In this document: in pieces, positions 35,133-47,416 of the stretch | Numbering within the stretch: position 1 is the stretch's first letter | How the letters are laid out: every line of letters starts with the position of its first letter | Assembly: GCA_025558095.1 (NCBI GenBank) | Contig: JAIVFI010000004.1 | Span: forward strand, 372,001-436,000 | Origin: Hyaloraphidium curvatum SAG 235-1 | Taxonomy: Eukaryota > Fungi > Monoblepharomycota | Length of the DNA: 64,000 nt | Direction: 5' to 3' | Notes under the pieces: generated by a model | What the model was told of the DNA's origin: nothing | The model's database searches: none | What the model saw: the letters and a program-made list of their open reading frames with translations, nothing else | Program-made: the position numbers and the translations under genes

Positions 35133-37334
35133 CTACATTTTTTCGAGCGGCTCAATACCCAGGAGCATCATGCCCGTCTTCATGGTGGCCAGCGTGGCCT
35201 TGCACAGGCGCAGCCGCGACGCGCTGACGTCCTTGTCCACGCTCTCGCCCAGCACGCGGCAGTCCCGGAAAAAGTCCGAAAACTTGCCCGAGAGGCCGTA
35301 GATGTACTCGCACAGCTTGTGCGGGAGCAGGTCCACCTGCACGTCGACGATCACCTCCTGGAAGCGGCAGAGCTCGACTGCCAGAGCCATCTCGGAGCGG
35401 TGCGTGAACAGGAAGGCCTTGTCGTAGTCGGCCTCAGGGTACGCGAGCACGGCCTCCACGTTCACGTCCTCCTCGGCGGCCTTGCGGAAGATGGACTCGA
35501 TCCGCGCGTGCGCGTACTCGAGGTACACCACCGTGTTGCCGTCGGCGCTCAGCATGCGCTCGTACGAGAAGCCATAGTCCTGGTGCCGGTTCTGCTTGAG
35601 GTCGTAGTACTTCATGCCGCCGTACCCGAGGATCGACGACGCGCGCTCGATCTCCTCGGGCGTCAGCTTGGGCCGGCCCGACTCGGCGTCGGCGCCCTCG
35701 GCCTGGTACGTCTTGACCACGCGCTCCTTGGCCTCGTCCAGGACGTCCACCAGGCGCACGCTGTCGCCGCTCCGCGTCTTGAGCTTCTTGCCGTCCTCGC
35801 CCAGGATCACGCCGAACCCGGCGTGCTCCACCCGCGTCACGGCGGGGTCGTACCACCCCGCGAGGCGGCCGGCGCCAAAGATGAGGTCAAAGTGCAGACC
35901 CTGGCCCTGGTCCACGACGTAGACGAGCCAGTCGCCCCCGAGGTCCGTGAGGCGGTACTTGAGCGCGGCCATGTCCGTGCTGTCGTACCCGTACCCGCCG
36001 TCCGACTTGACCAGCATCACCGGGACCTCCTGCCCCGGGACGCGGATGATGAGGGCACCGTTGTCGACCTCGCAGATGCCCTTGTCCTTGAGCTCCTGCA
36101 CCACGGCGGGGATCTTGTCGTTGTAGAACGACTCGCCCAGCAGCTCCAACCGCTTGTCGACGCCCAGGCGCTCGTACACCTGGTCGAACATCTTGGCGCT
36201 CGCCGCCACCATCCGCTTCCAGAAGGCGATGTTCTCGGGGTCCAGTGCCTGGAGCTTGACCACCTCCTGGTGCGCGCGCTTCTTGAACCCCTCGTCCGCG
36301 TCGAACCGCTTCTTGGCGTCCCGGTAGAATGTCGTCACGTCGCGCAGGCTCGCGTCCAGCTGCTCGTCCGTCACCTTGCCCTCGGCGAGGAGCTCCTTGA
36401 CGTGGGCCAGGAGCATCCCGAATTGGGTGCCCCAGTCGCCGACGTGGTTGGCCCGCTGCACGATCTCGTGGCCGCAGTACTCCAGGATCCGGGCGAGCGC
36501 GTCGCCGATGATCGTCGAGCGGAGGTGGCCGATGTGCATCTCCTTGGCAATGTTGGGGGAGGAGTAATCGATGACCACGCGGCGCTTGTGGTCGCCGGGG
36601 ATCAGGGTGGGCTTGACGCCGTGGCGGACGGTGTAGCCCAGCCGAGATTTAAGGTAGTTGGTGGCGAGGTAGATGTTGATATAGCCCGGGCCCGAGGCGG
36701 CGAGCTTGCCAATCATGAAATGCGGGCCCTTGGCCTCGATCGCGGCAATGACAGCCTGGGCCGCCGCCTGGGGCGACGCGGGTATCGGGCCGAGGTCCAC
36801 AGCAGGCGCAGGTGCAGGTGTGGCCGGGTCGGGTTCCGGCGCGGGAGGTTCCGGTGCGGGAGGTTCCGGTGCCGGTTCGGCATCCTTGGCATCGCCTTTG
36901 CCTGACAAAACGGCATAGTCAGCTCCTGAAGCTGGATCAACCCGGGCTCACGCTCATCGCCCCCGAATGGCAACGAAAACATCACGAAACCGCCAAGCCT
37001 TAACCCAAGAAGCCCCTCGCCGTCCCCGAAGCGTCTACGCACCCTTTTTCTTCTCTTTTTTCTTCTTGTCGCCGGCAGCGCCCCCGGCCGCGGTCTTCAG
37101 GCGGTTGAAAACGGCGAACGCCGAATTGCATTGGTACTGGTGGTCAAATTTCGGGTCTTCCACGAGCGCAATGACGGCATCGCCCTGGCCCAGCGCCCGG
37201 GCCTGCGGGAAGGCGGTGTGGATGGCGTCCGTGAAGAGACGCGTGAGCTCCGCCAGGATCGACACGGTGTTCTGCTCCGTGTCCGACGGCGACAGCGGCG
37301 CTGCCGTGGGATACGATGGCAGGCTCGTGGCCAT
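35133..37334 (-). CDS. RARS: Cytoplasmic arginyl-tRNA synthetase, 2 exons
   Basis: YQCNSAF, GPGYINI, VVIDYSSPNIAKEMHIGHLRSTIIGD, NHVGDWGTQFGML, KSDGGYGY, KKLKTRSG and GNTVVYLEYAHARI. Confidence 0.97.
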
Positions 37335-37500
37335 GGCGGCTGCGCGGCCGGCGTAGGCGCGAGAGTCCGGGGAGAAGAAGGTGGGAAGGAGAGAAACGGC
37401 GGACGGCGTCGGTCGCAGGAAGCCCCGGCAGGCAAGCGGCGGGAAGCCAATCGTCCGATGAATGAGCGCCCTGCCGACGAAACAGATCCGATCCAGCGTG

Positions 37501-37680
37501 CGCTCGTATGCTGCTCCACTAGCTGTTCGCGCACAAACGTGGCTACACACATATGGAATGCTACTTGCCACCAAAAAGGCGGTCCTCTCGGACTCCACCT
37601 CGATCAAGCCCACAATCGGGCACAGGCGAGGGCTCGCACCACCCGCCAATTTGTAGAGAAGAAAGATAAGAAGACCCACG
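37501..37680 (-). ncRNA. Candidate Fanzor omegaRNA (scaffold at element end, guide read from flank)
   Basis: Lies between the Fanzor 3' end and the transposon terminus. Several hairpins, including AGGTGGAGTCC-GAGA-GGACCGCCT (37577-37600). Boundaries are inferred. Confidence 0.5.
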
Positions 37681-37795
37681 GCCGGGGCCGTCCAGCCTGA
37701 CCTTCTTGGCAGAGCCGCGTCCCCGCGCCACCGCACCAGGACGCTTGGGCACGGTGGGAACGGATCCGGTCTGAAGAGTGGTGCCTGCAACGCCA

Positions 37796-40700
37796 TCAGC
37801 TCACACGCTCCAAAGCGAGCAAAATCAGCGTACCAGCGGACTTCGCGGCCGGCTTCGACGGCTTGCGCCTCCTGGTGTCAGGCTTGAACGGCCAGGGGCG
37901 CTCGCCACCGGTAGCGATCGCGAACCAGAACAGGTACCCGATGGACCGACAGCTGTTGACGTCCCTCATCCAGTACGTGCGACAGGTCGGGCAGTACTTG
38001 GCGCCCCGGATCTCGCCACGGCACCCGGGGTTGGTGATGGGGACAACGTAGGTCGTCAGGCACCTGCCGAGAGGGCGATCAATGCCGCGAAATCAGGCGC
38101 GAAGTACGAGGGAAAACTCACTTTGAACACATCTGGCTCGTCAGGTACTCGTTGATCAAAACGAGGATTCCAACGGCCGCGAGCGCGGCCCTGAACTGCA
38201 CAATCCGAGAAGCCGGACCGCCCTTGCTTGCGTGACCAAAGCGGGCGGCGCCATAGGCGAAGGTGGTCTGGGAATCGAACTTGCCCGAGTACGGGTTGCG
38301 ACACAGGTCGCGGGCGATCCAGTCGAGCACCTGCCGACGCCTCCGGATGGTACGGACGCGGTCGCGGCTGCAAAAGAAGGCGTCAGGAAGGCTGCATCCC
38401 AATCACGCAGGCTGGCCGTGAACAAACCATATCTCATCATTGCAGTAGAACTTGACGACGGAGCAGAGCTCCTTCGTGATGGCATGGGCGTACTTGCGAA
38501 ACTGCTCGCAGCTCGTCGTCCGCTGCGAAGGCAGTGCCGATTCCCAAGCCTCGATTGTCAGGCCGGAGGGGAGGGTGTGCGACTTGCGCAGCGACGCCAG
38601 TTTCCTAGAAGCGTGCTGGTAACCACACATCCGGCGATCGAGGTCCCCAGGCACGCCGAGAATGAGCTCCGGAAGCTGGCGGACGCCGGCGCGCCCAAAG
38701 CCGGCGATACCACCCCAGAACCTGTCCCCGTCGGCATCGGACCCGCCGTCGGGGTTGGGGAAAAGCGTCCAGTTCCGTTCGGCCTTCCGCAGCTTCTCGT
38801 CGCGGTTCGCATGCCCGCGGTTGGTCGGGCGGTGAGCCGAGAGCTTGGCGGCGCCGTCCGGGTGGTGTCGGCAGCGGATGTTGCGCGGCGCCGCCTGCGT
38901 CGCCCGCGCAACGCGGGCCGTCTCGTCGCAGGAGTGTTCGAGCCGGATGTCCTTGATGCGGCCCGCAGAGATGCACCCCTTGGGCACGTTGGCGCGCACA
39001 AGAATGTATGTCGATGTGGTGCCGTCCGGGTTGGTGACGACGATCTTCTCCGAAAGCTCGGGTAGGTGGGTGTTGGCGAAGTCGAACCGTCTCCCCGGGC
39101 CGGGGTCCAGGCAGCGGGCCACAAACGCGGGTGCAAGTCGTCGACCGCCCTGCATATAGAACCAGCGATTTGGATCGCAAAAGACAACGCCACCAGAAAC
39201 GGGAAGGCCCCGTTGGGCGGCATCCCACATCTCCTCTTCCGTTGCCATTGTTAGGAAGTGCGGCATTAGCTTCTCCGCGTCCGCCTTCCGGCTAAAGTTG
39301 TAGCACGGTATAGAGGTCTTCCAGTCAACAGGCGGACGAGGTATCGATGAGCACGTAGAGCGAGGGTGCGGTGGGAGAGGAGCGGAGGTTGGAGGCTGAG
39401 CAGGGGCAGGTGGAGAAGAGGGCGGAAGCGGAGAAGATCCTGCGGCACCCACAGGCGAGGCCGTCGGGATGGGAAGAGGAGGCGGAGGAGCGAGGGTGGG
39501 AGTGAAGGAGGATGGAGACTCGGAAGGTACCGATGTGGAGGAGTTCGGTGATGTTGCGGGTGGGGGTTCGGGGGGGATGGAGGCGGGAGGCGGGAGCCCG
39601 ATCCAATCCTGATCCACGTCCATCCACGTGAAAGGAGTCGAGTCGGGATCTACCAGCAAGTGCTCGGCATCGTCGGTAATGGCGGGCGGGGGGAAGAAGA
39701 CGGTCCCGCCAGCATGGAGCCAGCCGTGAGCTTGAAGATGAACACATCAGCAGCGCTGAGTGCAGCGGCAAGGATGACATACCATCAACGACGGCCATGC
39801 CCGGCGGGGGGTCCGGAGCACCGTGCGGAAGGGTGGGCACGAGGACCGCGGGCATCCCGAACGAATCTTGGGCCGAAAAGTCGTGCCAGTGGGCGTGCTG
39901 TTCTGGCTCCGTACACTCCCAACACGGCTCGGGCGATGGCGCGCTGAGGAAGACTGTTGGGAAGCAGGTTAGGCGCGGAAGCTCCGATGAAAGAACGGGG
40001 ACCTACAATCCAAGGGCGGCGTCACTTTGGGCTCAGATTCCGTCCACTGCTGCTGCGGTGCCTTCGGCTTCGAAGCCCTGGGCACGACGGCCATTGTGCT
40101 CCTCGACAATGGCAAAGGTTGGGCCACGAAGAACCATGCCAGCAATGCACGAGCAGTGCAGCGCATCGCCCGACCGGCGAAGGGTCGGCCGTGAGGCGTC
40201 CGCGTGCCCTGCCGGGGAGCGCTTCCCCTCCTGATGGAGGCGGAAAAGACGCTCGTCCTGAACAATTTTGTTGCCATTGTTGAACAGGTGTCCAAACAGG
40301 TAATCGGGGTTGATCTTGGCCACGTCCGGTGCCAAGGGGCCGAGCTTAACACCGAGCATCTTGAAGAGGTCGGGCAGATCGCTCGCGGTTATGTACAGGG
40401 CTATGGGGGTGAGGGAAATCCTGGTCAAGAGCGGCCGGATCCCGCCCGCGGCCCAGGTCCCTCCGGTGGTGCCGCCTTGGGTCCTTGACTGCTGTTGTTC
40501 ATGAAACGTATCAGAATGACGACCTCACCACGGGAGAGAACGCGTCACCCACGCTCTTCTCCCCGCTCCCTCCGGCCGCGCTGGACCATCGGCGAGCCGC
40601 CACACGTGACTTCCCCAATCGCTTCTTCACCTTGCCCTCGGGCGACAGCGGCGCCCGCTTCTTCCCCGTCGTGACGTAGCCATGGAATCGCTTGGGTGCC

Positions 40701-42974
40701 CCGTTCTTCGGCCACGGCTTGGGGTCCACTCGGATCGGTCGGCCCTTTTTCGACTTCTGCTTCCCGCCGCCGATCGTGGGGAAGTCGTCAGCAGCCTCAA
40801 CATTGCCGTCTTCCGAGTCGGAGCATTCCATGTCCGCGCAAAGCAGGTCCACGGCGGCACTTCCGCGGAACAGAGTCGCAGAGGGTCCACCACCCTCCGC
40901 CTCGTTCGCAGGGTCAACGTCCATTGCGGCCTCGGTGGTGAAGCTGGCGGCGACGCGCCGAGCGCTGTCCGCCGCACTCGATGATGAAGGTGTCGGTGTC
41001 GAGCTTTGCGGCAAGGCCGTCGGGCTTGGTTCAGATCCGGTCGAGGCAACGCTTGACGATCGCCGCATCTTGAGCCTCGCGATCTGCTCCTCCCGCAGCC
41101 GCATAGTCTGAAAGAGAGCCTCGGAGCCAAACGCGTCCGCGTCCGCGCATTTGCCCGTCTGCGCGAGGCGAAGTTCAGCTGTGCTCAGCTGACGCGCCCT
41201 CTGCCTCTCATCGAGCAGCTCCCTCTCGTAGCGCTGCAACAGCGCCTCCTTGTCCAGGCCCTCCGTCCACTCCGGCCCCCAAAAGCGGCTCTTTGTGGGG
41301 TGGATGCCAACCCCCTGCACGGAGGGGATCTCGACGGGGATGCCACGCAACTGCAGCTTGTCAGCCACATACGTCTCGACCAGTTCGTGCCGCTCCTCCT
41401 CCTGCAGTTGCCTGATCGCTTCAGGCGGCATCCGGCGGAGCTCGGCTTGGGCCCGGTCGCGCAGATCCAGCAGGTACGCCGCCTTTGCGTCCTCCTCGTC
41501 CTGCGACTTGCCGCGCGCCTTCTGCGGCGATATGGCGACGCTGCGGATACGCGTCGCCATCGCCGACCGCTTCAGCTCCACGTCCCGCTTCCTCAGCGAA
41601 AGCATCACGCGCTGTAGGACAGTCGCTGGCCATTTTGGCCGGTCGCGGGGCTCCCGCAGGTCCATGATCGTATTCAGCGAGCGTCCGGATAGCGGCAGGA
41701 GTAGCCAGGTCAGGCGAAGCCGAGCCTCCGCGTCAAACTCGGGGCTGCAGCCAAAGGCCGCGAAGCTGGTGCCGAAAAAGTTCGTATCACCCGTCCCGAG
41801 CTTGGCCAGCACGCAGCGCAAGATGTGGCCAATCTTTTGCCGCTTCACGGCGTTGTCCAGCTCCTCCTTCAGGAAGGTGCGGATCAGGTCCGAAAGCTCC
41901 TTGCGCAGCTGGATGGGGACGGTGCGGAGGCGTCCTGCGGCAAGATTCCTGAAGTAACCGAGCAGCGGGCCGCGCAGCAGGTAGTGGTGCCAGTCGGCAA
42001 ACTCGGAAGCCAGGTCCGGCCTCAGCTCGTGGTAGGCGTCGGTGACTACCGCCCGCAGAACCGCAGCCGCCGCGTTATGCTCCTCCACGGAGAGGGTGCC
42101 GGGACCGTCAAAAACCTCGCCGTCGTCGGCCATCCCGTCGCCACCGAAGCCGGCGCCCAGAGCTTCCAGCACGTGTTCAGGTCCGTCGGCTTCCCCCTCG
42201 CCGGCCAGGAAGTCCGCGAACCCGGCGTATTCACCGAAATCTCCGCCCTCCTCTTCTTCTTCCCCATCTTCGGCAGCGGGCTCGTCATCGTCCTCCGCCA
42301 ATTCCGTGACCGTGCCGAGTCCCGCGCCAGTTGCGGTGATCTCCACGCCCGGATCCGTGCCGATGTCCCCGCGCGGCTTCTTCCTCCGGCGTGTGCCTGC
42401 GTTGGCGTTTAGCGCCCCCTCGTTCAAAACCACCAGCATCGCCATGTTCGCTACGACGGAAGGTGGGAACTTGCGCAGGATGGCAGGGGGAACGGAGCGG
42501 TTGTCCAGCAGACCGTTGTATACTGCCAGCATCGCCGAGGTCCAGACGAGCTTTGCAAAGGACGCCGCACCGGTTGCGGCGCGGGAAATGAGCAGCCCCA
42601 CGCTCTTGAGCGGCTCGATCGCCCAGGGGTGGAGGGCCTCCTCGGGCAAGAACCAGGTTGTCGACATGGCGCGCTCGGTCACGTGCCGCTCGTGCTCCGC
42701 ATCCCCGACGGCCTTGTACGCATTCTCCGCAGCTTGCCGCAAAGCCGGCCGGCATCCTCGCCGGTGTCCCCGGGTTGTCGACAGGCAGAGGTGGCACCTG
42801 GGCTCCTTTGCCGCGCAACCTTCGTCCTTCGCCCCGTCTACGTCCATCGCCGTTGCTCCGGCGGCAGCACTCTCCGCTTCCGTTGCTTGAGTGCGGCAGG
42901 CGTGCGGCACAATGTAGTTGACCTGGGCGAGCAGCAGTCCGCGCCGTGATGTGAAGGCCCGGGGGATGACGAGG
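37796..42974 (-). CDS. Fanzor (eukaryotic TnpB-like RNA-guided RuvC nuclease), multi-exon
   Basis: RuvC-I CLDPG (D 39105-39107), bridge-helix region FY...R..RRRRQVLDWIA, AYGAARF..SKG, RuvC-II LINEYLTSQMCSKC (E 38148-38150), zinc finger CPTC, RuvC-III WMRDVNSCRSI (D 37961-37963) and RPWPF. In-frame introns 38368-38427 and 38064-38121. Confidence 0.88.
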
Positions 42975-43668
42975 CTGGGACAGCGAGGATGAGTAATGAC
43001 CCCGTGTGGATCTCTTGCGGAGACCTACTGGAGAGGAGCATCTGCATGCTGGGTTTCCACGTGTTCCCGGTACTTGGCCTCGAACGCAAACGTGACACGC
43101 CTGCCGTCTTTGCGGCAGATCTGGCACGTAAAGTGCTTCCCCGCGACGTGATGCCCGAGCCGCACGCCAGCGTCGTACTGGCGCTGATCCGACGACTTGC
43201 CGGCCGTAGCGCCGTTCGCGTCCTTTCTCTTCCGCTCCGGGTTCCGAGCCGGCACCCGGCCCTCGACCGCCACTGTGAAGGGACAATAAAGGCATCCGAG
43301 GGAACAGATGTCGACGCGCTTGGCGTCAAAGGCCTTTTCGAGCGCGTCCAACTTCAGGTGGAACGCGACGCTCGCGCGACGGGCGGCGTCGCTGACAGGG
43401 TTCACGAGCGAATCGAACCCCCAATAGTCCAGCAAATGGTCGCGCATCGGGTGGCCAGAAAAGATCAACTCAAACAGGACCGAGCGCCCCTCCTCTCCGT
43501 GCACAGCAGCCAAAGCCTTGTCGAAGAACGAGCCGAGGTCCGCGTCCGCCCTTTCGCTCACGCCTCTTAGCCCCTTCGTGGGCTGGAAGATCTCGTAGAA
43601 GGTCAGCGGCTGCGAGGAGTGCACCGTCAGCCCAGAATGCTGGAGCTGGAAGCCAGAACGTTGCTCAC

Positions 43669-46065
43669 CAGCGCGGGCACCGGACCACGATCCGGTATGC
43701 CCAGGAGCGCCTCGTTGGCCTTCATGGGGCCCCAGAGGAAGGTTTCGAAGAAGATGCGGCGCTGTTCAGCCTGCTGAAAGGCAATGTCCTTGGGCAAGTC
43801 CGTGCGGACAACGAGCGCCATGCGCTCTTCCAGAGTCAGGCTGGCGAGCGCAACCTCGAGCGAACGACTCCTCCGATCCCACAGGGCTTTCCCGGACGCG
43901 TTCTTGAGCGCGCCGAGGGCGTCCTCCAGGATCTTGCGCCAGTTCTGCGGCCGGCGGAGGTGGGTCTGGGCTGGGAGCTCGAAGTCCTCCACGGGTATGA
44001 GCCCGGCTTCCGGCTGGCGAACGAAGTGCCGCACTCGAGCAAGGAATACGGAATGGACGAAATCATCCAAACGAGCCGCATCACTCGCCATCAGCCGCCC
44101 ACGCAGACGGATCTCGGTCGCTGCCGTCCAGCGGTGGAAGCCTCCTTCACGGTCGACCGCCACCAGGCGCGAGACAAAAAGTCGTTCCTTCCTCGTCGCG
44201 GAGAGGGACGAGTAACTGCCGTCCGGACGACCCTGGTCCAGGTCGGAAAGCCCGGCACAGCACGCGTACTTGACAGCCTCACGCAGGTCCTTGGGCACGG
44301 TCGGCTCCAGCGCGTAGTCCAGCAGAGCGTCCAGCTGCGCCCCCGGGGCTCCGACAACGGCTGGAGCGAAAATCGGGTTCGCTAAAACAGTTGGAAAGAG
44401 CGGCGGAGGCGGCGAGAGGCCGGAAGGGGTGCCCGCAGTGGCCGGCGATGGTTCGTCGGCGACGGGCGCGGGGAGCCGACGTCGCTCGACGAAGTTCCGC
44501 AGCTTCCGGCAGAGGGCCGCGCGGACCTCCTTGCCTTTGCCTTTCTCGACTGCGGAGCATATTCCGCGGAACTGGTCGGGAGGGAGGGAGGTGAGGGTGC
44601 CGATGACGTCCTTGGAGGCGGTGGCGCGGGCGTTCTGCAGCTCGTCCAGAAACGTGTTCCACGCCGATCCGAAAGCACCTCCATTACTGAGTCCTCGTAG
44701 TCGGCCATAGAGCTGGTTCACATCGTAGGCCTTGTGGACGTCGACCTCGGCCACTCCGAGTTCCCGGGCCTGGGAAGTCAAACGGAGGTCGGCACGCGTC
44801 AATGACGACGGCGACGAGTTCCCCACCTCCTGCAGCAGGCGGGCCGCTTCTCGAGCAGCGATGCCGTCGTCCACCGCGTTCCTGGGCGCGGCCCCGGGAC
44901 CCGGTCCGGTGTCCATGCGGGTCGAGTTTGTGTCTCCCGTGATCTCGCCAGTTGCCGTTTCCGGTTGTATGCACCCGCTCGTGGAACCAAGGTTGTCGGA
45001 CCGAAGCATCTCCCGCTGAATGCGCGCCTTCTCTTCCGCGCTGAGCTTGATGCAGTGCCGAAAAGTGGGACAGAGATCGCTCTCCCCAACAATTCGTATC
45101 GCCCTCTCGACAGCGTCAATCAGATCGGCCACAGTGGAGGGACAGTCTCGCCGGACAAGGCGCTTCAACCGCCCTATCACGTGCTCACTCGCATTGAACT
45201 CGGGAGTACGGGGTCGCAGGTACACGAGGTTGAGGTTGTTGGCTTTCGCCACCGCCTGAACCGCGAGGAACGATTTGCCGGAGGTGTTCTCTACAATCGC
45301 AGTACCATTTGCGGTCTTCTTTGCCCTCAAAGGGGATCCATGGTAACCAGCATTGTCAATCACAATGTTCAGCGCGTTCTTGGGGCCCTGTCCGTCTGCC
45401 TTAACAGACCTCAAGAAAGCGCAGAATCGCTCCGTGTTCATATTGCCACGGTAGATCACATACGAGATCACCGTTCCAGCAACTGCTCCCGGACGAGGAC
45501 TTGGTGACACTGCGAGACACAGAGTCACCTTTGGACCTCTATTCCGCGGGAGGTAGACAACAGCGCGGCTTCCGCGGTCCGAGTACCCGTGGCTGCCCGG
45601 GTCGTTGAGCTCGAAAGCCGTTTCGTCCAGTGCGACCATGCGTTCCATAGGCACATTCTCGATGCGACTATGAAACAGAAGATGCCTTTCCGGTTGCCGT
45701 AAGGCCTCGGAAGACTTGACGGTGAGCCTCTTCCTAGTGACGCCATTTGCCTTCAGCAGCCGCGAAACGTGCTGCTGGGAGACGCGGATCCCGTACTTTT
45801 CTGCCAGAAAAAGAACTAGCTCCTGCTGGGTGACCCTGACCTGGCTTTTTGCCTCGTGTACGATGTCCTGGACCATCTGGTCCGTGACCTTGCGGCGGCT
45901 CCGGACCTTGCGAACTCCCTCTCTCGATGCCGGGGGCAGCGATGCCCACTTGATCCAACGAAAATAGGTCGTGCGATGTACTCCCAACGACGCAGAAATC
46001 TCCGCCGAGCTCAGCTTCCCAGTCTGCTTGAGCCGAGTTGCGATGGCGGGGCCGTCCACCAACAT
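43669..46065 (-). CDS. IS630/Tc1-family DDE transposase with long C-terminal extension (exon 1 of predicted fusion gene)
   Basis: HTH (EISASLGVHRTTYFRW), second HTH (YGIRVSQQHVSRLL..G.TRKR), catalytic ALDET (45625-45627), IDNAGYH (45355-45357) and PEFNASE (45184-45186). Confidence 0.92.
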
Positions 46066-46260
46066 TGGCGTCCGGGGCACAGGTAGTTGTGAAGAAGCCC
46101 GAGGCGCAGAGTTTGCAGATGGAGATGCCAAGGCCACTGGCTCGCTGCAACAGCTAGTAGCAGAGGCGATGTGTGCGACTACGGGAGTCCGATGAGGCGC
46201 GGATCGACGCGCGATCAAAACAACCGTGAACCCGGAAGCCAACCCCCAGACGGGCGAACG

Positions 46261-47416
46261 ATGAGCGAGTCTGCTGAAGTTGCTGCGTCTCCGGCAAAGA
46301 TTGAGTATCGTCTGGCGCGTGAGGAGGATCTGCCGACGTGCGGGGAGGTGTTCTTCGAGGCAAGTACCGCACCCATTGCATGATCTCCTGCATCTCTTTG
46401 ATATCTGCGCACGGCAGGGGCTCACCGGCTACCTGAAGAAGCTCAACTCGGCGGACAAGCTCATGATGATCCGGGAGCGCATCTTGGCGGACGTGGTTCG
46501 GTTCTACCGGCATGCTCTCCAGACGGATCCAGAGAACTTTTTCATTGCTGAAGACGTGGACGCGGACAAAATCGTCGGTTTCGCCACTGCGACAAGCCGA
46601 CCTCCGATGTTCTTTGTCGGTGCGTACGCCCGGCACGGACTGCTGATCCAGCAGTAAACTCCGTCTGGCCCTCCTCCAGGCTTTGTTTTCGTACTCCCGG
46701 ACTACGCGCACCCCAAGGCCAAGGGCGTCGGCCGCACGCTCTTCGGGCGCCTCATGAAGAACGTGCCGGAGGGTGATACTGTCGGCCTGACCGTCGACAC
46801 GGCGCAGCCCATCTCGAATAGCCTCTATGCTCAGTGGGGCGTGGTCGGGAAGCAGCCCTTGCAGTACCTCGACGGACCGCTCGACGTCTCGAAAATCGAC
46901 TTCCGCAGAACGCTCACCCCGGTCAGCATCGTGGCTTCAAATCCCACCGAGTCGCAGATCACGTTCGAGGACGCGCTGCCGAAGATCCGTGCTCTTGACG
47001 CGGATATTGTTCGGTTTGCGCGGAGGAAGGAGGATTGGGACTTCATCTACGCTGGCCGGCCCATCGCGCAACTCTACAAGGACGAAGGCGGCGCGGTTGT
47101 CGGCTACTCTTTCGCTCGGCGCGGCGCGGGCATCGGGCCCGTGGTCGTCAAGAAGCCGGAACTGCTGAACGAAGTCGTGATCGACGCGCTGATGCGTGCG
47201 CTCGAGGCCGGTCGCGAAGGGAGAGAGAACCCGGAGCAAGTCACGGTATCGTTGTGGTTCCCGTCAGGCGCCCTTCCCGAGCTCTTCGCGCTACTCCTGA
47301 AAGCGGGAATGAAGATCTCCGGCTTTCCAATGTTGCTGGCATATAACGGAGCTGCTGGAGAGCCATTCCTCTGTGATCTCTCACGGGCTCTCATGTACAG
47401 TGCGTCGATGTTTTGA
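46261..47416 (+). CDS. GNAT-family N-acetyltransferase, 3 exons
   Basis: YRLAREEDL, FFIAED..KIVGFA and FVLPDYA..KGVGRTLF. First intron is GC-AG (46360-46417). Confidence 0.78.

Follow-up and report, generated by a model that had tools for sequence, protein, structure and literature searches.

Can a DDE transposase and an RNA-guided nuclease of the Fanzor type be made as a single protein? The prevailing view of Fanzor and TnpB is that they are accessory nucleases, which aid the persistence of a separately encoded transposase. The question is raised by a locus of the fungus Hyaloraphidium curvatum SAG 235-1, on contig JAIVFI010000004.1 of assembly GCA_025558095.1. The stretch analysed, here called the window, comprises 64,000 nucleotides (nt) of this contig (positions 372,001 to 436,000), and all coordinates below are positions within it unless another contig is named. 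An initial annotation had read the minus strand between 46065 and 37796 as a Tc1/IS630 transposase and a Fanzor, joined across seven introns into one fusion protein of about 2,600 residues. What lies here is a copy of an 8.64-kb DNA transposon that was active recently; this copy has been inactivated by a one-base insertion. The element's only gene has nine exons. We consider it probable that the product of this gene is a single transposase-Fanzor protein with about 2,685 residues, whose Fanzor part would be loaded with RNA from the 3' end of the element and would cut in cis.

A spliced gene on a young transposon

Alignment of five genomic copies, the flanks of which are unrelated, defines the (frameshifted) copy in the window as 37540-46180 on the minus strand, with a length of 8,641 bp. 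The exons, introns and other parts of the element are all given on this strand. The other four copies were located by a DNA search of the organism's own 31.9-Mb genome, using window 37000-47000 as the query (contigs C25, C36, C16 and C5). They are 8,653–8,662 bp long, and small indels near the 5' end account for the difference in length. The five copies are 99.76–99.93% identical across approximately 8.6 kb, and such identity implies recent movement. A DNA search of the genome also revealed a sister family, here called family 2, which matches both ends of the first family (family 1) at 65–71% nucleotide identity, the two matches being some 7.5 kb apart. There are at least five copies of family 1, including that in the window, and at least ten of family 2. 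The further copies and the second family identify the locus as a young multi-copy mobile element and not a host gene. Open reading frames (ORFs) on the plus strand of the element contain no Pfam family.

The gene is transcribed and its introns are spliced. Logan contigs from two public runs, X1 and X2, were aligned on window 37800-43790 (5,991 letters). Run X1 is from one organism. All seven introns of the initial annotation have been removed in its contigs, and the joints read CT..AC on the plus strand, corresponding to GT..AG on the coding strand. X1 appears to derive from RNA, because all five genomic copies retain the introns. Run X2 is a freshwater polyA metatranscriptome, and gave three short contigs with at least 99% identity (window 38644-38855, 39340-39573 and 40926-41155). 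These matches indicate that the element or its host occurred, and was being transcribed, in a freshwater sample from the environment.

The exon structure is as follows. Exon 1 (43669-46065) has 799 codons and begins with the ATG at 46065. It is followed by intron 1 (43610-43668, 59 nt, GTGAGC..CAG), exon 2 (43029-43609), intron 2 (42975-43028, 54 nt) and exon 3 (40553-42974, 807 codons). Intron 3 (40492-40552, 61 nt, GTGGGT..CAG) separates this from exon 4 (40007-40491), and intron 4 (39954-40006, 53 nt) separates exon 4 from exon 5 (39783-39953), which is placed by the X1 joints and by phase counting. After intron 5 (39731-39782, 52 nt) come exon 6 (38428-39730), intron 6 (38368-38427, 60 nt), exon 7 (38122-38367), intron 7 (38064-38121, 58 nt) and exon 8 (37834-38063). 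Each of these introns is defined by a joint in X1. Six of them are exactly as first proposed; the third is 40492-40552, and not bounded at 40489 or 40528, the two positions originally suggested. Introns 1 and 2, on which the initial annotation had made the fusion depend, are both spliced out, and exons 3, 2 and 1 are linked in a single X1 contig of 6,636 nt, which extends past the aligned stretch.

One X1 contig has a loose end of 244 nt at 37833, and the adjacent 30 letters map to window 37754-37783. This suggests an eighth intron at 37785-37833 (49 nt, GTACGC..TTGCAG, thus also GT..AG). Exon 9 would then be 37561-37784, ending with a TAG stop codon at 37561-37563, in a frame that is also open in the four other copies. 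The stop codon ends 20 nt before the last base of the element (37540).

Phases and stops were counted exon by exon with a script, over the exons supported by X1. With seven introns, four of the five family-1 copies have a single open frame, 2,623 codons long. The eighth intron would remove the TGA with which this frame ends, and would lengthen it to 2,685 codons in these four. In the window copy the frame stops at codon 1,952. The initial annotation had noted that its exons were one base out of frame, with the break near 40080-40150, and proposed to test whether the consensus of other copies is one open frame. The break is an extra T in exon 4, at 40094/40095, present in the window copy only: this copy reads CCATTGTG, whereas CCATGTG is found in the other four genomic copies and in the X1 contig. 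The four others are uninterrupted.

Family 2 is colinear with the exons of family 1. Searches using tblastn gave identities of 44% for exon 1, 36% for exon 2, 33% for exon 3, 43% for exon 4, 42% for exon 6, 81% for exon 7 and 68% for exon 8. Pairwise comparison of the families puts amino-acid identity at 36–83%, with 36% for exon 3 and 83% for exon 7. Frame-preserving GT..AG introns can be placed in family 2 at positions 1, 2, 5, 6 and 7, the fifth being a likely homologue of intron 5, and none at positions 3 and 4. With these two fewer introns, the counterpart of exons 3-5 is continuous, and a single exon of 2,930 nt carries the linker and the N-terminus of the Fanzor. Two family-2 copies have one predicted frame of 2,697 codons, not counting an equivalent of the eighth intron, the donor of which is present there. 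One further copy is frameshifted and one has a deletion.

The proportion of synonymous differences between the families (pS) is 0.54–0.69, so that synonymous sites are nearly saturated. The ratio of nonsynonymous to synonymous change (dN/dS) is 0.31 for exon 1, 0.38 for exon 2, 0.49 for exon 3, 0.32 for exon 6, 0.09 for exon 7 and 0.36 for exon 8. Because these values are low despite the near saturation, the open frame, including a linker of about 800 residues, has been kept by selection and not by chance in GC-rich DNA. It is true that GC-rich DNA yields many long spurious ORFs and that the window copy is frameshifted, and continuity of the frame could on these grounds be attributed to chance, to an assembly artefact, or to a dead relic without function. 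We regard this as extremely improbable: phase is maintained across eight spliced junctions in 8 kb, the frame is intact in four independent copies and has been retained by the sister family in the face of saturated synonymous change, and copies that are 99.8–99.9% identical imply recent movement of an element whose gene is transcribed. The single-gene fusion is thus well supported at the levels of DNA, splicing and evolution, by the X1 junctions, the frame open in four of five copies, the colinear sister family, and dN being smaller than dS.

From transposase to Fanzor

The domains of exon 1 were defined using Pfam and an alignment of the catalytic triad. The DDE_3 family (PF13358) is found with a score of 46.6 bits (cut-off 28.6) in a 932-codon ORF of the minus strand, at approximately 45148-45642. 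The triad consists of D147 (45625-45627), D237 (45355-45357) and E294 (45184-45186), all three of which are invariant among 13 sequences, from both families and 11 database relatives. The helix-turn-helix (HTH) region at approximately 45727-46041 scores just below threshold for both HTH_33 (24.3 bits, cut-off 25) and HTH_23 (20 bits, cut-off 24.6), and it aligns with the database relatives. The initial observation that the ORF does not end with the DDE domain, but runs on for some 800 codons to a GTGAGC donor, is borne out by the 799 codons of exon 1, which include an extension of about 450 residues after the DDE domain.

An exhaustive search of 1.84 billion representatives found relatives that match only residues 1-350 of exon 1, the best of these (428 residues) having 46% identity. 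All were ordinary IS630-like transposases of 200–620 residues; no long fusion was seen in this library, and residues 350-799 were unmatched. The blank is weak evidence, since the library consists mostly of prokaryote-style gene calls. Two database IS630-like transposases, P0003 and P0005, are 34% identical to exon 1. P0003 has classical C2H2 zinc fingers after its DDE domain, and P0005 has a Cys-rich tail. The zinc-finger extension of the fusion may have had its simpler forerunner in a transposase of the P0003 type.

Exon 2 contains two Cys/His units resembling zinc fingers, at approximately 43046-43294. The ligands C106, C109, H153, H154, C162, C165, H183 and H188 do not vary between the families. 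The domain order first proposed, with HTH and DDE followed by C2H2-like fingers, a CCHC-like knuckle and a Fanzor body, stands in its main parts. For the part of exon 5 that was read as the knuckle, a search of the sister family gave no match. Exon 3 consists of a linker with no Pfam match and no relatives in a word-indexed search of a 5.8-billion-cluster library. Likewise, Pfam and protein-library searches found no family or relative for the linker of about 1,000 residues formed by exons 3-5.

The Fanzor body begins in exon 6, after a proline-rich spacer, and was recognised by its match to a standalone Fanzor paralog in the same genome. This paralog is a single exon of 664 residues (L021:1740-3731, minus strand; C2:397239-399230), with a PF07282 (Cas12f1-like TNB) score of 32.2 bits. 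It matches exons 6-7 of the fusion with an E value of 3e-35 and exon 8 with 1e-7, and is 33% identical to the Fanzor part of the fusion. In a search of the genome with PF07282, the end of family-2 exon 7 alone scores 22.6 bits, and three other loci, the standalone paralog among them, are above the cut-off of 26.3. The ESM Atlas look-alikes of the standalone paralog are PF07282 clusters from eukaryotes and giant viruses.

A profile was built from the paralogs and the exon pieces of the fusion, and run against a structure database. It matched LaTranC (1.1e-7), Spizellomyces punctatus Fanzor1 (8gkh, 1.8e-7), the mimivirus TnpB-like protein L79 (5.6e-7), Guillardia Fanzor1 (7e-5) and ISDra2 TnpB (4e-3), and also Fanzor2 and Cas12f structures. 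The alignments run through the E of the ...EY.TS... motif, the CxxC/CxxC ribbon and the RD.N motif. In the gene, the RuvC-II glutamate (38148-38150, in INEYLTS) and the first CxxC of the TNB zinc ribbon are in exon 7; intron 7 interrupts the ribbon; and the second CxxC (37982-37993) and the RuvC-III aspartate (37961-37963, in RDVN) are in exon 8. The order is thus INEYLTSQMCSKC…CPTC…RDVN, with exon 7 being 83% identical between the families (dN/dS approximately 0.09). Exon 9 adds a basic tail (…SAKKVRLDG…) resembling a nuclear localisation signal (NLS). The C-terminal part of the protein therefore has a RuvC D...E...D and a CxxC/CxxC TNB ribbon of the Fanzor1/TnpB type, followed by the NLS-like tail.

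Two of the three RuvC motifs named in the initial annotation, INEYLTS and RDVN, hold. The third, LDPG, was probably misassigned. It has N in place of D in family 2, and it is 301 residues from the TS. The RuvC-I aspartate is probably the D at 38736-38738, within GGSDADG in exon 6. Both families and the paralogs conserve this residue, which is colinear with the DPG of canonical paralogs when their profile is aligned to exon 6. It is 176 residues from the RuvC-II glutamate, the spacing in canonical paralogs being 173–176, and 178 residues before the TS, as expected from the signature D-X(125,275)-[TS][TS] (PMC3627910). Another candidate, in CDPNR, was set aside in favour of this colinear D.

Several searches with single parts gave nothing. 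PF01385, the Pfam model for TnpB RuvC-I, has no match in the whole genome. Exon 6 and the standalone paralog have no matches in word-indexed protein searches, exon 6 alone has none in the ESM Atlas, and patterns from exon 7 found no relatives in a scan of the JGI metagenomes. It was suggested from the start that the introns hide the nuclease from ORF scans by splitting its motifs, and the exons taken singly do indeed go unmatched (see below). Catalogues based on ORFs and domains will miss such genes, because the introns split every diagnostic motif.

The genome contains other genes of this kind. Locus L023 (C2:426379-428334) is a neighbour of the standalone paralog and is 49% identical to it. 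Its frame is 1,205 codons long with one in-frame stop, and has about 550 unexplained residues upstream. A further Fanzor1-like family has a canonical DPG at RuvC-I (L024 on C14; L037-L042 on C31, twice on C2, and on C7, C1 and C34). Its open frames are 666–1,230 codons, and the last exon is apparently behind an intron that follows '...CWNR'. L024 has an N-terminal region rich in Cys and His.

Ends, insertion sites and the conserved 3' block

The 5' terminus of the element is AGTCGCACACAT (46169-46180) and the 3' terminus is …ATGTGTGTAGCCA (37540-37552), as placed by alignment of the ends. They form a short, imperfect terminal inverted repeat (TIR) of about 12 nt, in which approximately 8 of 12 positions match between AGTCGCACACAT and TGGCTACACACAT, the latter being the reverse complement of the 3' terminus. 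At the 5' junction, the family-1 copies have the dinucleotides TA, TA, TA, AA and GA, and the family-2 copies have TA twice and TC six times. The 3' dinucleotide is constantly CA in family 1 and constantly TA in family 2. In two family-1 copies, the spacer between the element and the host motif described next is shortened, to 18 and 6 nt. The constant 3' dinucleotide in each family, together with the variable 5' junction and the two shortened spacers, suggests less precision in the step that makes the 5' joint than in the one that makes the 3' joint.

Each of the five family-1 copies is inserted in the same orientation beside the motif GCGTCGATCA, which has one mismatch in one case. In the window, the motif is GATCGACGC, at 46202-46210 on the plus strand, just beyond the 5' end. 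The distances from GTCGATC to the five copies are 21, 21, 21, 18 and 6 nt. Across the genome, the family-1 motif occurs 244 times, compared to 18 times for the reversed control. At all five copies there is a host ATG 19–59 nt beyond the motif, on the opposite strand. In the window this start codon is at approximately 46261, and the element adjoins two divergent host genes: on the left an ORF resembling arginyl-tRNA synthetase, and on the right the ATG-initiated ORF, which starts about 80 nt away. Two of the five host ORFs beside the motif resemble the starts of what we take to be conserved housekeeping genes. The element may borrow bidirectional host promoters, given that its own ATG is preceded by only about 115 nt of the element.

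Six of eight family-2 copies have a motif A[AC][AG]GG[GA][CT]T whose end lies exactly 26 nt upstream of the element's 5' end. Both the motif and the distance differ from those of family 1. In neither family can the motif be counted as part of the element, as copies that are almost identical differ in their motif variants and their spacers. The spacers of 21–26 nt between motif and element are, by inspection, different in every copy. Matches to them, such as a guide of the kind used by a CRISPR-associated transposon (CAST) would require, were also sought by inspection in the element and in the 3' flanks of other copies, and none was seen. Hopping directed by a guide was rejected for the same reason, the spacers being unmatched in the 3' flanks of other copies. 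Since no two copies share a spacer and none of the spacers has a counterpart in the elements, site choice is most likely made by a protein reader, either the zinc fingers or a host factor, and not by a guide RNA.

Near the 3' end, a block of 21 nt with a hairpin is kept at the nucleotide level in both families. It lies at 37576-37609, in the form AGGUGG-AGUCC-loop-GGAC-CGCCUU. Under the likeliest splicing, the block is in another frame or non-coding in family 2. The loop differs, being GAGA in family 1 and GUCAG in family 2. Family 2 has in addition a perfect hairpin of 7 bp (GCCGCAA-AGGA-TTGCGGC), the loop region of which resembles the target motif of that family. The block at 37576-37609 is a candidate for the scaffold of a guide RNA, or for a binding site of the transposase.

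The fixed distances invite the suggestion that the Fanzor serves for targeting and not for homing: with a fixed internal guide, or with a DNA-binding surface, it would dock at the motif and so set the distance at which the DDE domain acts, in analogy to CASTs. Distances of 21, 21, 21, 18 and 6 nt from GTCGATC in family 1, and of 26 nt in six of eight family-2 copies, do resemble the length of a guide-target duplex. However, the motifs are short and degenerate, the 21–26-nt spacers differ from copy to copy and are unmatched in the element and in the 3' flanks of other copies, and the 3' block is the same in both families in spite of their different motifs. The RuvC triad is moreover intact, unlike that of the inactivated effector in Cas12k transposons, and the conserved zinc fingers offer a simpler, protein-based reader. 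We therefore find a targeting role for the Fanzor doubtful. A wider version, to which we also give only a small share of our confidence, is that the fusion is a complete targeted integrase, which would read the promoter-proximal motif by RNA or by zinc fingers and insert 21 or 26 nt away in one orientation, its nuclease also restoring the donor copy. If that were true, one targeting scaffold would have been reprogrammed in nature to give the two families.

One protein or two: comparison with known systems

We propose the following scheme for the single fusion protein. The DDE part would excise and integrate the element. The tethered Fanzor part would be loaded with RNA from the conserved 3' end, and would cut DNA in cis with transposition. 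Its simplest target would be the emptied donor site, as for TnpB, where repair would copy the element back. The zinc-finger and linker part or a host factor, but not a guide RNA, would set the insertion sites, at a fixed distance and in fixed orientation from a short, partly degenerate motif that lies upstream of host genes.

A number of observations count against the fusion protein and this scheme. The window's own copy is broken by the extra T. The status of X1 as RNA is a guess in the label of the run ('RNA?'), and is here deduced from the loss of introns. Its contigs tile the locus in five pieces, none of which spans the whole gene; Logan contigs, in addition, cannot reveal transcript starts, transcript ends or the proportions of isoforms. 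The evidence for the eighth intron is one loose contig end. Exons 2-8 taken singly give no Pfam match and no sequence match in the PDB, which can be ascribed to the introns that split the motifs. An AlphaFold2 model of the standalone paralog, made from an alignment of 11 rows, has a pLDDT of 48, and is too poor to use. At the ends of the element, a longer TIR was looked for and not found, and the junctions of neither family show a clear TA target-site duplication; both points are atypical for IS630/Tc1. Finally, the 3' ends fold no better than shuffled sequences (z -1.1 and 0.05), so that folding energy lends no support to the candidate block there.

Some of these points would also be compatible with a frame that is real but yields separate working products, a transposase and a free Fanzor, by means of an internal promoter, alternative polyadenylation or splicing, or proteolysis. 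Known Fanzor1-Mariner elements carry separate ORFs (PMC3627910; PMC10530073), and the TnpBs linked to IS630 are genes of their own (PMC10691335). A standalone Fanzor paralog is present in the genome too, and different isoforms are compatible with contigs that come, for X1, in five pieces. On the other hand, neither family has a stop between the two parts; about 1,500 linker codons are open, with dN smaller than dS, in families close to synonymous saturation; one 6.6-kb contig shows in-frame splicing of introns 1 and 2; and Pfam scans of the exons found no protease domain. Separate products are thus distinctly unlikely in our view, and a single protein is preferred.

The initial annotation remarked that Fanzors and Tc1/mariner transposases usually have separate ORFs, and this is how they are described in the literature. 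Bao & Jurka (2013; PMC3627910) reported Fanzor1 in Mariner/Tc1 elements as a separate gene. Jiang et al. (2023; PMC10530073, preprint PMC10312701), Yoon et al. (2023; PMC10711439) and a 2026 review (PMC13565253) also describe Fanzor and transposase as separate genes, and the same holds for the IS630-linked TnpBs of Altae-Tran et al. (2023; PMC10691335). The papers searched, which were those outside subscription-only journals, contain no description of a transposase-Fanzor fusion. A covalent fusion, maintained in two families that have diverged and are still mobile, would be evidence that physical coupling of the two activities can be selected for. Insertion at a fixed distance and in fixed orientation from a motif would make this a natural eukaryotic system in which to study how cutting, RNA guidance and integration are coordinated, and possibly a template for compact targeted-insertion tools that work in the eukaryotic nucleus.

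Among known systems, the Tc1/Mariner elements that carry Fanzor1 (PGv-1 and PUl-1; PMC3627910, PMC10530073) have the same combination of DDE transposase and Fanzor1 within one eukaryotic element, with the Fanzor on the 3' side next to the end. They differ in having separate ORFs, clear TIRs and TA duplications, whereas the present element has one spliced gene with a single frame, about 1,500 linker residues including zinc fingers, imperfect TIRs of about 12 nt, no clear duplication, and insertion linked to a motif. In the IS630-linked TnpB elements of prokaryotes and Klosneuvirinae, a DDE transposase of the IS630 family is likewise associated with a nuclease of the TnpB family, and these elements have been proposed as the link between TnpB and Fanzor (PMC10691335). 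However, they have separate genes, a separate HTH protein and symmetrical ends, with no introns and no fusion.

The Fanzor1 proteins of S. punctatus (8gkh) and Guillardia theta (9cer) are the best matches of the C-terminal module among solved structures. The former, SpuFz1, comes from a chytrid. They have in common with the module a 'PS..t' helix, the RuvC-II glutamate, the TNB zinc ribbon and the RD of RuvC-III. Both are stand-alone and much smaller RNA-guided nucleases, whereas the present module forms the C-terminal part of a predicted protein of 2,685 residues. The CAST systems of type V-K, with Cas12k and the Tn7-like TnsB/C and TniQ, also combine a protein of the TnpB lineage with a DDE transposase, and insert at a fixed distance and in one orientation. 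In these, the components are separate proteins, Cas12k is dead as a nuclease, and the site is chosen by a crRNA. In the present element, the nuclease is joined covalently to the transposase and has an intact RuvC triad, and inspection revealed no guide complementary to the site.

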